From sequence record NC_071007.1: DNA of 64,000 bases; one strand, 5' to 3'. How positions within the stretch are numbered: position 1 is the first letter of the stretch; the number at the start of each line of letters is the position of its first letter. Under the pieces are notes generated by a model. That model was not told the origin of the DNA. It did not search any database and saw nothing but the letters and a program-made list of their open reading frames with translations. Positions 9,749-35,500 of this stretch are shown piece by piece. A program made the position numbers and the translations under genes.

Positions 9749-10045
9749 TTAAAAATGACCATGGTTATTTATATAAATAGTGGAATCAACAACGATGGCA
9801 ATAACATAAATAATAATTTCTTTATTGCTAAACAATTTATCTTCTCTCCAGTAAAGAGATAATAGATACCAAATAGCAATTGGATACGTAAATGTCCCAA
9901 AACCTTTTAATTCAAAAATCCCAAATAAAGATCCGCATAACGCCATTAAAAAAGTAAATGTTTTATGCATAGGTTCTATCATAAACCAATTTTTGATCTT
10001 CTTAGAAAAAGTTTTCATATCCGTAATACCCAAAAATAATGACAA
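9749..10045 (-). CDS. Small multi-pass membrane protein
   Basis: Three hydrophobic stretches; true start may be MKTFS at 10018. Confidence 0.6.
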   Translation of the reverse strand: MSLFLGITDMKTFSKKIKNWFMIEPMHKTFTFLMALCGSLFGIFELKGFGTFTYPIAIWYLLSLYWREDKLFSNKEIIIYVIAIVVDSTIYINNHGHF

Positions 10046-10304
10046 TTATAATCCCAAACCCTAATACATGTTTAGGGTGTATAATAAAAACATCTTTTTG
10101 AAATAACACTTTCCAAATTCTAAATAATAGGAAATAAAGTATGATCTCACCTAGCCACCCAAAACCTAATGGTTGTGTTAAACAACACAATGGATAGATC
10201 AAGGTTAACATAATCAAATTGACCGGGGCTCGTAGCACTTCCCTTCCGTTTAATCCTAACTCCTCATTAGTCGGACCTTTCATAGTTTCTCTCAGAAATA
10301 ACAA
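10002..10304 (-). CDS. Small multi-pass membrane protein
   Basis: Three hydrophobic stretches. Confidence 0.6.
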   Translation of the reverse strand: MLFLRETMKGPTNEELGLNGREVLRAPVNLIMLTLIYPLCCLTQPLGFGWLGEIILYFLLFRIWKVLFQKDVFIIHPKHVLGFGIIIVIIFGYYGYENFF

Positions 10305-10343: not shown

Positions 10344-10373
10344 AAGTGTAGGGAGCTCACGCTCCCTACACTT
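10344..10373 (-). terminator. Terminator after chaperonin gene
   Basis: 13-bp stem AAGTGTAGGGAGC/GCTCCCTACACTT. Confidence 0.85.
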
Positions 10374-10376
10374 ATT

Positions 10377-11969
10377 TTAACCTACATAAGAACTATGAGA
10401 TCGCCCCATGATATTAGAAAGTTTACACAGTGTTTTTGCTGTAGCCCAAGCGCCAGAAAGTGCAGTCAATGTTGCCGCTGCATTATCAAACACTTTGGTT
10501 GGTTTACTTTCAATTTCACCAGTGACCAAATCCAGGAACTTTGGTTCAGATCCAAGCTCAAATTCGACGTCTCCGGAAAGATGTTTGTATTGAGCGAGAA
10601 GCACATTTAGAAATGTGTTAAACAATTCAACATTTTCTTCTTTTATTTCTTTACCCAATTTTTCCTTAATTTGATGAGCGGCACTCAAATAGCCATAACC
10701 AATTCCAGGAAGAATGCCATAAATAACACCAGTCTTAGCTGCTTTCATTGCATCTTCATATCGGTAATAACGTTCACTCGCTTCGCTAGGAACTGTACCA
10801 GTAACTTTGATAATGATATTGTTGCCGGTAAGTCTAGAGATACGATCAAACAGATTTTTACCAATAGGGGATTGGCGCTCAATGACGTTCATGACATCAT
10901 AACGCTTTTTAAGCTCCTGTACCAGCTTAGGAGCAGTTTCTTTAATCCATTCGTTGTCTTGGTCAACTACTAGTGAGTTCGGTCCCAGAATGAATCCAGG
11001 ACCGGTATAATCGTTTATTTCATTTTCGATATCGTGAAAATCATTAACGGAATTGATTTTGAGCAATTCACACAAATCACGAATAACGTTAGAACCAAGA
11101 CTACCTGGCGCATTCAGTTGGTAAGGAAGAATGCGTGTACCGAATTTACTGTTGACTTGTTTAAACAATGTTACAACAGACGGATCAAAGTTACGTGCCA
11201 TGATAATAATGTCACCGGCGTAAGCTGTGTCAGAATTATCATCTTTTACTATCTTGGTCAAAAGGTTAATATCAACTTTAGAAATATGGCCATCAACTAC
11301 AATAACACGGCAACCTGCTTCTTTGCTACAAGGCTTTTGACCATTGTCATTGGTACGAGGTCTAAATTCGTCGGTTGCATAACCACCCAAGAAATAAATG
11401 GCGCTATTGGTTTCAATAGTGTCTTTTGGAAGTGACGGGACTTTCTGGAGAATGACGTTTGGGTTGTCATATTTTCGATAAATATCCAGAATACGATCTA
11501 CAATTTCAGATTCATAGTTAGAGGTTGTCATCAACATGTTTCTGAAAAGTTCACTATTAACATCACCAGGAATGGTCATGTCCTTTAGGATTTCCCTAAC
11601 TTCCTCCACCCAACTATCGATTAGCCGGAAGTTATTAAATGAAACTTTATTTTTAAAAGCCTCATAAAAATGTCCAAGCATAAATACAGTTGTGGTAGTG
11701 CCATCGCCTACTTCAATGTCAGTTTTAATGGACGGTTCAGTAATAATTTTGGCAATAGCATTACGACGAGATTCGTTAAAATCAAGTGCCTTAGCTACAC
11801 TGACACCATCTTTAGTCACTTTGGGAAGATTCTTTTCCAAGATGGTTACATAACAGCCATCTGGACCCATCGTGCTACAAACAGCCTGTACTGCATTTTT
11901 AACAACTTCATCAACCAGTACACGGGTATCATCTTTATTAGTAAAGGTGATTTCAGTAAGAATAGACAT
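10377..11969 (-). CDS. groEL: Phage GroEL-like chaperonin
   Basis: TKDGVSVAK, GDGTTT, RYEDAMKA, GILPGIG; 530 aa; lacks GGM tail; no GroES nearby. Confidence 0.9.
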   Translation of the reverse strand: MSILTEITFTNKDDTRVLVDEVVKNAVQAVCSTMGPDGCYVTILEKNLPKVTKDGVSVAKALDFNESRRNAIAKIITEPSIKTDIEVGDGTTTTVFMLGHFYEAFKNKVSFNNFRLIDSWVEEVREILKDMTIPGDVNSELFRNMLMTTSNYESEIVDRILDIYRKYDNPNVILQKVPSLPKDTIETNSAIYFLGGYATDEFRPRTNDNGQKPCSKEAGCRVIVVDGHISKVDINLLTKIVKDDNSDTAYAGDIIIMARNFDPSVVTLFKQVNSKFGTRILPYQLNAPGSLGSNVIRDLCELLKINSVNDFHDIENEINDYTGPGFILGPNSLVVDQDNEWIKETAPKLVQELKKRYDVMNVIERQSPIGKNLFDRISRLTGNNIIIKVTGTVPSEASERYYRYEDAMKAAKTGVIYGILPGIGYGYLSAAHQIKEKLGKEIKEENVELFNTFLNVLLAQYKHLSGDVEFELGSEPKFLDLVTGEIESKPTKVFDNAAATLTALSGAWATAKTLCKLSNIMGRSHSSYVG

Positions 11970-11976
11970 ATTAACT

Positions 11977-12004
11977 TTTTCCTTTTCTAAATAGAGGAGT
12001 TAAA
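11977..12004 (-). repeat. Conserved intercistronic leader, copy 1
   Basis: TTTTCCTTTTCTAAATAGAGGAGTTAAA, identical to 45718-45745. Confidence 0.8.
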
Positions 12005-12773
12005 CGTTTTTACTTTCTTGTTTAGTCAGGTAATCAAGTCCACTGACCATTGTTTTAAAACTGGGGCGCTTTGGAGGTGTTGGTACAAATTGTTTTAACC
12101 CATACTGCTCCAAATATTCATCAGTTAACAATGCAGCTTTTCTAATTGTTTCTGGTGTATCGGAAGTATGTGCTAATTTCAATCCTTCCCTTGTTAAAAT
12201 AATCCAGTTCGATGGATTAATTTCTTTAAAGATAATCCCGTCAACAATTCCTTTTGTACCAAGCCAAATTGTTTCCATCCCAGTAAAGTAAATTGTTTTA
12301 CTATCAAACAACCTTGTTACTTCATTAATTGACATACCCGTTGTTTCAGCAATTTCTTTATGCGCTGTTTGGCTCTGGTTTACCAAAGTAGGGAGAGCAG
12401 AAAAAGCTTCTTCATGATCGATATCAGCTAAAGAGTAACTGGGTGAATGTTGAAACCAGACTGTATTAGCGTACGTCAAACGAAGGTATTTATCACTGGT
12501 AAATAAATACCAACCAGCACTTGCAATTCTTGACGTTGCAATAACAACAATATCTTGATGTCGTGATTCCAACATTTCTTTAATTACGAAACTTGTAGCT
12601 ACATCTCCGCCAGGTGTAGAAACATTTATTCTTATTGTATCTCTAGGATCAACTGCAATTTGAGGAAGGAAGTTAGTTGTAGCAAATTTTGCATTTAAAA
12701 TATCATGGATAAAAATGTTTCTGAGGTTTCCAGTTGAAACTTCTTGTTGGGTTTCTTTATTAGCTTTTGACAT
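12000..12773 (-). CDS. ClpP/crotonase-like protease
   Basis: RINVSTPGGDV, IASAG (catalytic Ser), FQHSP (His), GIVDGII. Confidence 0.75.
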   Translation of the reverse strand: MSKANKETQQEVSTGNLRNIFIHDILNAKFATTNFLPQIAVDPRDTIRINVSTPGGDVATSFVIKEMLESRHQDIVVIATSRIASAGWYLFTSDKYLRLTYANTVWFQHSPSYSLADIDHEEAFSALPTLVNQSQTAHKEIAETTGMSINEVTRLFDSKTIYFTGMETIWLGTKGIVDGIIFKEINPSNWIILTREGLKLAHTSDTPETIRKAALLTDEYLEQYGLKQFVPTPPKRPSFKTMVSGLDYLTKQESKNV

Positions 12774-13016
12774 TTAACGTTTCCTTTTCATTTCAATAAA
12801 AAGACAAAGAAGAAAAATTCCATATCCTAAATAAAATACTGGCCAACATGTTAACAACATAAATTGAATTAAAGACACCAATAATTTTTGTTTAAAAGTG
12901 TTTATGTAAGGGATACCAAAACACCACCAAAAATTACCTATTGTTATTAATCCAATGTACAAATAAATAACAAGAATAACTAAACATCCAAAAATCATTA
13001 ATAAAGAAGAAAGCAT
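12774..13016 (-). CDS. Small two-TM membrane protein
   Basis: Two long hydrophobic segments; first gene after promoter at 13044. Confidence 0.65.
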   Translation of the reverse strand: MLSSLLMIFGCLVILVIYLYIGLITIGNFWWCFGIPYINTFKQKLLVSLIQFMLLTCWPVFYLGYGIFLLCLFIEMKRKR

Positions 13017-13043
13017 AAATAATACTCTTATTGATACACAATA

Positions 13044-13066
13044 ATAATATCTGTCTGTAAAAATAT
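13044..13066 (-). promoter_or_regulatory. Early-type promoter, long variant
   Basis: ATAATATCTGTCTGTAAAAATAT, 22/23 identical to 51057-51079. Confidence 0.7.
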
Positions 13067-13075
13067 AAAGAAGTT

Positions 13076-13109
13076 AAAATACTCACCCAGTCTCCTAGGT
13101 GAGTATTTT
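13076..13109 (-). terminator. Terminator after DHFR
   Basis: 12-bp stem AAAATACTCACC/GGTGAGTATTTT. Confidence 0.75.
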
Positions 13110-13111
13110 AT

Positions 13112-32521: not shown

Positions 32522-35500
32522 ATGACAACTGAAAAGAAAACGTTTCCTAGGTGGGTTAGAGATCCTTTATTTTCACCTATTAAACAATTCTTAAATAAAC
32601 GTTTAAAGATTATTACAGAACAAGGCGATTTGGTTGAACAGTTATTGGCAAATGACCGTTACAAGCAAATGAAACCAGAGGACTTTGTTGCGGAAGATAT
32701 TTTTAATTCACTGGATGGAAAGAAACGTTTCTGTTTAGTGAGAAGAAATAAACAATTTGCCAGAGTTGATTTAGAATTAGAACATGTTAGATTAAAAGAT
32801 ATTTTTACTGATCAAGATATCTCTTTTATTAGTTTAACAAATCAAGCTGAATTTATTCGTCGCTTTAAACTAGGTGAAGTACAAGGTAAATTGTTGTACT
32901 TGGTTTGGAGAGATAGTTTTGCTGTTTGTTTTGAAAACAACAAAATAATGAACCTTACCGAAGTAGATAAACTATTTAATCATATCTACTTTGATGAACT
33001 TCATTTAGAGCGTGTAGATGAAACTACAATTGATCCTAATACATTAACCAGTGGGGTTGTTAGGATTAAAGACAGAAGTTGCTCAGATGAGCTTGTACAC
33101 GTTTTTGTTACAGAAAATATCGTTGAACAGCTTGCTTTAGACAGGATTGTAGATAACTATCCTCCAACTATGATTTTGAGGCGCGGGGATAGTTTTAGAC
33201 ACCTTACCAAAATTATGATTGGTGATGAGGATGTTACTGGTTTAGCTGAAATTTCTTATATAAGTAATAATGGTCGTATTAATGTTTCTCAGACTACAAA
33301 TAAACTTGAAACTATTTTCAAAGCAGTTAGAGGATCAAGTACCGAAGAGTTGCAGGAAACAGTAACCATTAATATTTCTGTCAACTTTATGGGGGAAGTG
33401 TTTAATAAACAATCTGTTATTGCCACCAGGATTGTCCCTGATGTTGTCAGTGAGCTGAAATTAGAAGGTTATCCCGTAGAAGTTACTGTTCCGACGGGTA
33501 GACAAATAGGTATTGTTGTAAAAGGTAAGTTTAACAATAATTTTGTTTCTTTTACACAAGCACCTAATTTACTGACTAGTTTAGTAACAGGAATGACATT
33601 AACCAACCAAGGTAATTATCGGGATGGGATTCTTTATTTGGGGACCTGTAATGTCGATATTACTTCTGGAGTAATAAACGATTTATTAAAGGGTAATTTT
33701 ATTTATACAATAGCTGGGGCGACACATACGGCCAGTTCCTTTGTAGAATTAAACATTACGCCTGTAAATCCTAATTTACCAGAATTAGTTAATACTAGTT
33801 TAACCCCAACTCTGTTACAAGGTAATAATAACAGTAATGGAAGTTTTACTTATGTTAACAAATTAAACAATGTCATCATCCCCAATACCAAATTAGATAT
33901 CCCAACCACTGACTTGGGAAGTAAACGGTTAATTCGTTTTACTGGATTTACAACTAACAAAGTAAACTATACATTGTTAAACCTTGCCGGTAATCCAGGA
34001 ACTGTGGAGAGCGAACAAGTTACCTTTACAACAAGATACATTGATCCAACTACTGGTTTAGTTTATACTAGACAGGATAAAGTTACTCCTAAAGTAATTA
34101 CTTTATCAGATTTAGCGTTGATCTCTTTATTTGACCAACCCATTTCGGTTAAAAAATATGAATCTGGATTAGTTCCTTTTAAAATGTTAATCAATGGTAA
34201 TGAAGATAAAACAAAAATTACTACTATTGAAATCATTGATAATAAAAATTATTTAGCCGGAACTATTTTTGGTAATAAACCAAAAGGTTCTTGGCAGGTA
34301 TTTGGAACTGGTCAAACTGAAGAAACTATTCCCGTTAGTTTTAAAGTTGGTTTTAACGTTGATGAAACAATTAGGTATGTAACAGGAATTCAAAATTTTA
34401 TTGTTTCACCATGGATCGGAAATTCAATTGGCGTTATTCCAAGTGAATTAAATATTTCTGGAAGAGCAGGGGAAAGTGGAGAGTTTACATTATCTTTCTT
34501 TGAGGATGTAACTTTTGCTAATACTCGTTTAAATTACATTCCTGATTTGAGTATTGTCCCAAGTCAATTAAATATTGTTGGTAAACTACAAAGTAATACT
34601 GAATGGATAAAAGGGAGCTATCAGCTATTTGGAGTAGGGAACCATTTAGGACATTTGACATATAGTTTAACCGATGGAACAAATCCTGATGATACTATCA
34701 AAGTGCCTTTAAAAGTTACAATATTACCTGGAGAAGAATTATTCTTTAATGTCACAGGGCTCACTGAAGCAAAACCGCTCCTTCCAGGAATAATCAATTG
34801 TGATATCCAATATAAAGGAATAAACATTCCATTAAACGACCCTAGAGTACGTTTAGAAGTAGAGTTAGGGGAAAGAGCTAAGACTGTATTCACAATTGGA
34901 CAAACAACGTCTGAAGGGATTACATTCAACAGCATTGTAGATGATATCCCAATGGGAGGAAATGTTATTTATGACATGACCTCTGAACTTAATTTTATTG
35001 ATGATTTAGGAGTTACACAAACTCGCAGTAAAGAAATTGCTGTTAAACTTTATCGAAATAATTTTACTTCTGTTATTGCTACATTAATAACGAATCCAGT
35101 AAAACCAATTATTTCTGATCAACCAATCGTCATTAATATTAAAGATCTCGATAATGATCCTCTTCCGGGAGCAATATTGGAAAGTGTTGTTATTGCAAAT
35201 GACAGCAATCACTTAGGTCCTATTCAGAGTTATCGAAATTCACTCGTTGAACGCAGAACTCAAAGTCTAGGTAATTATGAATTAAAGGCAACAACAAACC
35301 ATTTTGGTGGGAATCTAAATACCACATTAAAAATTATCATAGGCGGGTCTATAGTTGATGTTGTTATTCCCGATACAATAGTCGGAATTTCTCCAATTAA
35401 ATCTTTGGCTGGAAACACAGGCATCGCGGTTAACAATATTGGTAGTACAATTAACTTCACATTAAAACAAGATCGTTTAAATAATTTAAATGTCCCTGTC

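Follow-up and report, generated by a model that had tools for sequence, protein, structure and literature searches.

Phage-encoded chaperonins such as OBP gp246 and EL gp146 have been proposed to form a third, lid-less group, and how an always-open ring folds and releases its clients is unsettled (PMC9598537). OBP gp246 is a single-ring heptamer that is active without a co-chaperonin, the phage chaperonins have been observed in open conformations only, and those of OBP, EL and AR9 function alone in vitro (PMC9598537). Earlier work on phage chaperonins used the chaperonin alone. Here we describe the genomic setting of such a chaperonin in ZPAH34, a phiKZ-related Aeromonas jumbo phage of the genus Chaoshanvirus (record NC_071007.1 / OM810292.1, 234,546 bp). 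We analysed a stretch of 64,000 nucleotides of this record, referred to below as the window, whose positions are obtained by subtracting 62,000 from the record positions. Three minus-strand open reading frames (ORFs) of the window encode, in the order of transcription, a protein with two transmembrane (TM) segments, a ClpP-like protein and the chaperonin. This three-gene cassette is real, conserved and previously unanalysed, and it places the chaperonin gene of the OBP/Aeromonas branch in a conserved, insulated unit together with genes for a membrane protein and an atypical, apparently ungated ClpP-fold peptidase.

On balance we favour the reading that the three genes form a conserved, transcriptionally insulated and probably early proteostasis cassette of the OBP-like/Aeromonas branch of the phiKZ-related jumbo phages. 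They would probably be read as one mRNA that starts at an early-type phage promoter with the core ATATTAT and ends at a hairpin after the chaperonin gene. The products would be a two-TM protein, a divergent ClpP-fold serine peptidase and a co-chaperonin-independent chaperonin of the OBP gp246 type, that is, a single-ring heptamer. The chaperonin would hold and fold phage proteins, and the ClpP-like protein would be a chambered, largely ungated peptidase that clears unfolded polypeptides or peptides and works without canonical docking to host ClpX or ClpA. Coupling between the two would come from co-expression and a common substrate pool, not necessarily from a physical complex. Within this reading it is the peptidase activity, the independence of ClpX/ClpA and the functional link between protease and chaperonin that we infer.

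A sequence-only reading that preceded this analysis had described a small membrane protein, a ClpP-like protease and a GroEL-like protein, with a promoter in front and a terminator at the end. All three ORFs are indeed present on the minus strand, at 12774-13016 (80-aa two-TM membrane protein; ORF list and phrog_9878), 12000-12773 (257-aa ClpP-family, S14-like peptidase homologue; PF00574, structural model and alignments) and 10377-11969 (530-aa GroEL-like chaperonin of the OBP gp246 type; PF00118, phrog_5725 and PDB 6hdd). The stop codon of the membrane-protein gene abuts the ATG of the ClpP-like gene, leaving a spacer of 0 nt, and the ClpP-like stop is separated from the chaperonin ATG by 30 nt that contain an AAGGA-type ribosome-binding site. 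Two terminator-like hairpins of the coding strand bracket exactly these genes, and no hairpin was found within the three-gene unit. The upstream hairpin (13075-13110, minus strand; 16-bp stem, -23 kcal/mol) directly follows the stop codon of the dihydrofolate reductase (DHFR) gene. The downstream hairpin (10344-10373, minus strand; 13-bp stem with 7 GC pairs and a T-rich tail) lies 4 nt past the chaperonin stop, where the terminator had been expected. Short spacers and flanking hairpins thus mark out the discrete three-gene unit that had been proposed. These boundaries are shared with related phages. An alignment of the spacers between the DHFR and TM-protein genes shows that pairing in the upstream hairpin is kept via compensatory changes in AerS_266 and CF8, and CF8 has the same unit architecture with flanking hairpins. 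Each of the 16 related loci has a hairpin after the chaperonin stop, with free energies of -17 to -29 kcal/mol.

The putative promoter of the unit is the element ACAGATATTATT with the core ATATTAT (13043-13054, minus strand), about 27 nt upstream of the membrane-protein start codon. It is unchanged between ZPAH34 and CF8 and carries one substitution in AerS_266; in the DHFR-to-TM spacers of all three phages the hairpin is followed by a conserved ACAGATAT(T/C)ATT element. Of the related loci, 15 of 16 have the motif NATATTATY upstream of the unit, and none of the 16 has it in the spacer between the ClpP-like and chaperonin genes. In the 10 loci that have it immediately before the ClpP-like gene it lies at -38 to -59 relative to the ClpP start; where the ClpP-like gene is preceded by a small gene, its position is -253 to -312. 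Most loci contain 1-3 copies per ~8.5 kb, and by a rough composition estimate the chance of a match is ~0.01 per 60-nt interval. The core ATATTAT is identical to that of the annotated early promoters of phage AR9, AAATATATATTAT. Within the window the related pattern DATATTATY is enriched, with 23 copies found against 12 expected, 17 of them on the main coding strand. For the exact 12-mer ACAGATATYATT there is no clear sign of repetition in the window (5 matches at no more than 1 mismatch against 1.7 expected, 2 of them intergenic). A scan for sigma-70-like promoters found 11 sites against 16 expected from shuffled sequence, which is not above chance, and ZPAH34 has its own phiKZ-type RNA polymerases: it encodes a homologue of the phiKZ gp180 RNA polymerase subunit (E 2e-67), and its close relative AerS_266 carries chimallin, PhuZ and two sets of RNA polymerase subunits (PMC10673249). 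Of the earlier claim of an upstream promoter, what stands is therefore a conserved phage motif and not a sigma-70-like site. By analogy with AR9 we infer that ACAGATATTATT acts as a promoter; a single early-type promoter would then drive the whole cassette, and co-transcription and early timing are what the sequence suggests. The form (G/T)ATATTAT(T/C) occurs in intergenic regions upstream of several units on the main coding strand of the window, for example at 13043, 21017, 31072, 48117 and 57628 (-), and is a candidate for the early-promoter consensus of ZPAH34.

The sequence-only reading had named a synteny survey across jumbo phages as a check on itself, and the arrangement proves to be conserved. 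From tblastn coordinates and annotations of the isolate phages, the ClpP-like gene immediately precedes the chaperonin gene in ZPAH34, AerS_266, CF8, AhC3_1, PS1, PS2, ACP1, AVP1, LAh10, D3, D6 and D9, and this direct adjacency is shared by Aeromonas phages that belong to at least four named genera. A single gene of the OBP gp245 family stands between the two in OBP, N1M2, Sureiya, Yubaba, SXP01 and Kc263, and in AH04 this gene is split in two. The pairing, whether direct or across a membrane-protein gene, extends over ~16 phage lineages. It is also found in distant metagenomic relatives (18-35% identity) from different samples, seven of eight of which lie directly upstream of a Cpn60 gene, the downstream gene being cut off and unidentified in one. 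The eighth (P0016, L031:4001-4642) adjoins the gene for the small subunit of ribonucleotide reductase (RNR) and has no chaperonin gene nearby. Kc263 has both types of ClpP-like gene; its second copy (L017:4881-5495), with the same C-terminal extension, sits beside the RNR beta gene, far from the chaperonin. Among chaperonin-bearing phages the ClpP-like gene is nested in one branch, which on this sampling, and counted without a phage tree, suggests one gain and two losses. EL ORF145, Miami gp203/204 and the genes upstream of the pTD1 chaperonin were considered as ClpP-like candidates and rejected, as they are not ClpP-like. In the literature that we searched, no paper connects the chaperonin with a ClpP-like or gp245-family gene. 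Adjacent ORFs appear in the Z90 paper as 'virion assembly-related' (PMC12837969), and Iyer et al. (2021) list the jumbo-phage ClpP, represented by the PS1 protein, as a patchy peptidase possibly deployed against the host (PMC7824862).

Among the closest described systems is the gp244-gp245-gp246 locus of OBP, which has the same module in the same genomic block, with the same features of the ClpP-like subfamily. The OBP block runs GNAT gp240, DHFR gp241, gp242, gp243, ClpP-like gp244, gp245, chaperonin gp246, gp247, gp248 and thymidine kinase (TK) gp249; the neighbours of the ZPAH34 ClpP-like gene are likewise thyA, GNAT, DHFR and TK. The two loci differ in the placement and size of the membrane protein. 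In OBP a soluble domain is joined to the TM module (gp245, 189 aa), and the gene lies between those of the ClpP-like protein and the chaperonin, whereas ZPAH34 has the TM module only, upstream of the ClpP-like gene, and an extra tail of ~30 residues on the ClpP-like protein. OBP gp244 also retains the catalytic Asp, unlike ZPAH34, which has Thr160 at this position.

The two-TM protein is, as judged from sequence comparison, a conserved member of the module, a point that the sequence-only reading had missed. Its 80-aa ORF contains two hydrophobic stretches and matches phrog_9878 (E 2e-7), and it is unannotated in the RefSeq/GenBank entries of ZPAH34, where the record has a gap between clpP and dhfrIII. 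The genes that separate the ClpP-like gene from the chaperonin gene in OBP (gp245), N1M2, SXP01, Kc263 and AH04 (split) form one family, and the gene that immediately precedes the chaperonin in the ClpP-less phages pEt-SU and Survivor belongs to it too. Members have an N-terminal two-TM module followed by a soluble domain, and the ZPAH34 ORF is homologous to the N-terminal module (hidden Markov model, HMM, E 7e-4, and 4e-17 after iteration). The same HMM matches the equivalent ORFs of AerS_266, CF8, AhC3_1, LAh10 and two metagenomic loci, and after iteration it finds 13 loci at E 1e-13 to 1e-21. The module has a conserved G...G...W-P pattern, to which the ZPAH34 protein conforms, and is encoded beside the ClpP-like and/or the chaperonin gene. 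The TM gene switches sides relative to the ClpP-like gene, yet remains inside the cassette. The soluble domain of gp245, with the pattern GKGGxYE...GAG...vYqD...lfHR..dF, matched no Pfam family, and its HMM hit neither the 64-kb window nor any Aeromonas phage locus examined. Being kept upstream of the chaperonin even where ClpP is absent, this domain could be a chaperonin accessory in its own right. The ClpP-like and membrane proteins offer two concrete candidates for chaperonin partners that can be taken to an established in-vitro system. Coordinates of gp245-family genes are L002:6543-7112 (OBP gp245), L020:3423-3971, L021:3393-3965 and L019:3657-3965. Equivalent TM-protein ORFs are apparently unannotated in AerS_266 and SXP01 as well, and in SXP01 the ClpP-like gene itself is unannotated (L016:3875-4537).

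The chaperonin is of the OBP gp246 type, in line with the comparison drawn earlier. It matches PF00118 (Cpn60_TCP1) with 53 bits (cut-off 34.3), phrog_5725 'chaperonin groEL' (E 8e-112), PDB 6hdd (E 2.7e-150 over residues 5-528) and PDB 6tmt, which is EL gp146 (E 1.5e-44), and carries the nucleotide-binding GDGTTT motif at residue 88. PDB 6hdd, entitled 'Putative chaperonin GroEL' and containing 7 chains, is taken to be the OBP chaperonin because the ZPAH34 protein is 48% identical to OBP gp246 (tblastn). The lack of a GroES gene, first noted from the sequence, extends to the whole ZPAH34 record: a six-frame HMM search for Cpn10/GroES (PF00166) returned nothing at E<=1 in the whole genomes of ZPAH34, OBP and CF8, and the same search was positive in 12 of 14 named control genomes. 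EL gp146 and AR9 gp228 are GroEL-like and GroES-independent (PMC9598537), as the ZPAH34 chaperonin would be, and EL gp146 is a detectable homologue. EL and AR9 differ from ZPAH34 in that their genomes contain no ClpP-family gene and their chaperonin genes have no detectable gp245-type gene upstream.

The 257-aa protein is recognisable as a ClpP relative, though a distant one. It matches PF00574 (CLP_protease) with 38.1 bits (cut-off 20.2) over profile positions 17-181 of 182, and a phmmer search of the PDB returned ClpP chains only (best E 2e-6). Against 1.84 billion cluster representatives phmmer found 60 proteins at E<=1e-3 and 13 at E<=1e-10, a word-based protein search for relatives found 2 proteins only, and a search for related loci in IMG/VR gave no matches. 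By sequence the protein thus belongs to a small, phage-only ClpP subfamily, defined here, which may act without an AAA+ partner. We compared its members in two alignments, one of E. coli ClpP with 12 isolate-phage members (ZPAH34 and eleven homologues) and one of 35 subfamily homologues with 18-63% identity to the ZPAH34 protein. With bacterial ClpP (MEROPS S14, for example that of E. coli) the ZPAH34 protein has in common the catalytic Ser and His, the oxyanion GG and the long handle helix, whereas it is only ~20% identical to canonical ClpP and has Thr in place of Asp.

In the first alignment the Ser column (IASAG, S85; codon 12519-12521, minus strand) and the His column (FQHSP, H109; codon 12447-12449) are filled in every sequence and align with the E. 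coli ClpP residues, which agrees with the assignment of these two residues in the sequence-only reading. Its doubt about the third triad position, at FDSKTIYF, was well placed: the column of E. coli Asp171 holds Thr160 (codon 12294-12296), so that the catalytic Asp of the S14 family is missing in ZPAH34. The column is D in AhC3_1, LAh10, N1M2, AH04, Kc263a, OBP and SXP01, E in PS1 and Kc263b, T in ZPAH34 and AerS_266, and G in CF8; most subfamily members have D or E. Residues G55, G56, S85, H109, G146, G172, G175, D178 and I181 are invariant in the 35-sequence alignment, and R195 and G197 nearly so. Because Ser, His and the oxyanion GG are invariant across 35 homologues as divergent as 18-63% identity, the alignment argues for a working peptidase, which in the genus of ZPAH34 would be a Ser-His dyad enzyme. 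A Chaoshanvirus protein that is catalytically dead after loss of the Asp, and serves as a scaffold, cage or regulator, would account for the T or G found at this column in ZPAH34, AerS_266, CF8 and P0003 against D/E in most relatives, and the nearby D157, which might have stood in, is not conserved in CF8. Ser85, His109 and the oxyanion GG are nevertheless still invariant in the Asp-less proteins (40-63% identity to ZPAH34), which is unexpected if catalysis had been abandoned, and we consider a pseudo-enzyme quite improbable.

A monomer model of the ClpP-like protein, built with AlphaFold2 (mean predicted local distance difference test, pLDDT, 91.6; predicted template modelling score 0.85), has the ClpP alpha/beta fold with the handle helix. 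Foldseek aligned it to ClpP chains with template modelling scores of 0.77-0.81, and a VIA alignment with ClpP structures gave Z 19.8 and a root-mean-square deviation of 2.1-2.2 A over ~165 residues. Model residues 16 to ~185-202 superpose on ClpP residues 25/26 to ~193-198, and it is because the structural alignment begins only at ClpP residue 25-26 that the N-terminal gate appears to be missing. Residues 1-10 are modelled with a pLDDT of 60, and in the multiple sequence alignment the N-terminal segment of E. coli ClpP faces a gap. According to the model, then, the phage protein has nothing that corresponds to helix A and the N-terminal axial loops of canonical ClpP. At the other end, it differs from canonical ClpP by an added C-terminal extension of ~80 residues in ZPAH34 and ~45-50 in shorter members (OBP and N1M2). 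The extension (residues ~179-257) begins where canonical ClpP ends and is conserved in the subfamily; it is modelled as a beta-meander (179-202, pLDDT ~98) with a nearly invariant TRxG motif, followed by short helices, and the Aeromonas phages have a further tail with a helix at its end. A structure-atlas search with the extension gave no recognisable relative and sub-threshold look-alikes only (template modelling scores <0.5, feature scores at chance). A derivation of the ZPAH34 tail from OBP gp245 was considered and rejected, BLAST and HMM similarity being absent.

E. coli ClpP requires its N-terminal axial loops and helix A to couple functionally with ClpX and ClpA. Because these coupling elements are missing from the model, canonical use of host ClpX/ClpA is unlikely for the phage protein, and the suggestion that it hijacks these unfoldases, made in the sequence-only reading, is weakened. 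In its full form this alternative holds that the phage ring takes the place of host ClpP or combines with it, and that host ClpX/ClpA drive it, its adjacency to the chaperonin being incidental. The intact ClpP core fold and handle helix of the model would allow this, phage Clp ATPases are apparently absent within the region examined, and the PS1 member (QDJ96709.1 = PS1_0198) has been cited as a patchy peptidase possibly aimed at the host (PMC7824862). Against it stand not only the missing axial loops and helix A but also the extra C-terminal domain, which begins at the canonical ClpP end and is attached at the face where unfoldase loops dock, and the loss of the Asp in ZPAH34. We therefore regard host hijack as improbable.

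Several observations weigh against the proteostasis cassette that we favour. The whole block thyA-GNAT-DHFR-...-chaperonin-...-TK is collinear in these phages, and the proximity of chaperonin and TK genes is kept even in phages without ClpP. Adjacency of the ClpP-like and chaperonin genes could, on gene order, be inherited rather than functional, and because the entire thyA...TK block is collinear, adjacency alone is weak evidence; a unit is argued for more strongly by the insulating hairpins, by the presence of one promoter motif and by the TM gene, which moves but stays inside. Genome-wide, no PF00574 gene was found in the chaperonin-bearing phages EL, Miami, pTD1, RisingSun, AR9, pEt-SU and Survivor. 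Since these seven phages encode a chaperonin without a ClpP, the chaperonin does not depend on the ClpP-like protein, and an obligate partnership of the two is weakened. The ClpP-like protein also evolves ~2x faster than the chaperonin (mean pairwise identity 25% vs 46%). With T or G at the Asp position in ZPAH34, AerS_266 and CF8, the ZPAH34 enzyme may be weak or inactive. Finally, the promoter assignment relies on an analogy with AR9, a distant phage.

The same distribution bears on whether the two proteins could form a physical complex. The sequence-only reading had suggested a dedicated fold-or-degrade unit in which the ClpP-like ring might partner the chaperonin, a coupling that is speculative. 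A ClpP-like heptamer might dock by its seven C-terminal extensions onto the seven-fold chaperonin, as a proteolytic cap, a fold-or-degrade machine or a GroES-like lid with a protease chamber, the membrane protein being a possible anchor. Seven-fold rings occur in both families, ClpP structures being heptameric and OBP gp246 a single-ring heptamer with no known lid (PMC9598537). The extension is specific to the subfamily, conserved (R195, G197) and confidently modelled from the point where canonical ClpP ends, and a ClpP-like gene of the subfamily is almost never away from a chaperonin gene. Physical coupling is opposed, however, by the seven chaperonin phages without ClpP, by the activity of the OBP, EL and AR9 chaperonins on their own in vitro (PMC9598537), by the paralogues with the same extension beside RNR beta and far from the chaperonin (Kc263b and P0016), and by the lack of a ClpP-chaperonin co-evolution signal beyond shared phylogeny. 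We consider docking of this kind unlikely. Its most specific form, in which the seven-fold ClpP-like ring caps the lid-less chaperonin via the C-terminal extensions so that chaperonin and protease form one symmetry-matched chamber, which the two-TM protein may tether to the membrane, seems quite improbable; if true, misfolding clients would pass directly to the protease without an AAA+ unfoldase. The favoured cassette reading needs no such complex.

The RefSeq product name of the ClpP-like gene is 'head maturation protease', which would make it a prohead protease. Apart from this label, there are weak matches to PHROG families of that name (phrog_1684, E 1.5e-5; phrog_94, E 7e-5), and the ClpP-like prohead proteases of tailed phages and phiKZ gp175 (MEROPS S80) are phage serine peptidases too. 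phiKZ gp175 is the type S80 prohead protease (PMC5694885), and AerS_266 gp171 is reported to be a homologue of phiKZ gp175 (PMC10673249). The ZPAH34 gene differs from the prohead proteases in genomic context and predicted timing: it lies in a nucleotide-metabolism block outside any head module, and an early-type promoter motif precedes its unit. The ClpP-like gene is missing altogether from closely related phages. ZPAH34 also encodes a separate phiKZ gp175 (S80) homologue (record positions 32844-33488, E 7.8e-22), as do OBP and CF8, and because a protease of this type is encoded elsewhere in ZPAH34, the ClpP-like protein is most probably not the head protease. We regard the RefSeq label as misleading and the reading behind it as very improbable; the present analysis corrects the label and adds one overlooked gene, that of the two-TM protein. 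A search with PF03420 (T4 gp21 protease) left the phiKZ-type head protease undetected, and the direct search with phiKZ gp175 detected it. The gp175-type match, outside the window, contains one TAA inside a 535-aa open frame and perhaps represents two adjacent genes read through.

Two further observations concern the surrounding block. Between the chaperonin terminator and the thymidine kinase gene, window positions 9749-10304 (-) encode two small hydrophobic proteins of 100 and 98 aa, and the same slot before TK is occupied by small genes in OBP (gp247 and gp248), CF8, AerS_266 and most metagenomic loci as well. In the Erwinia phage RisingSun, the thymidylate synthase gene of the same block consists, as annotated, of two pieces with a GIY-YIG homing endonuclease gene between them (L007:1622-3847).

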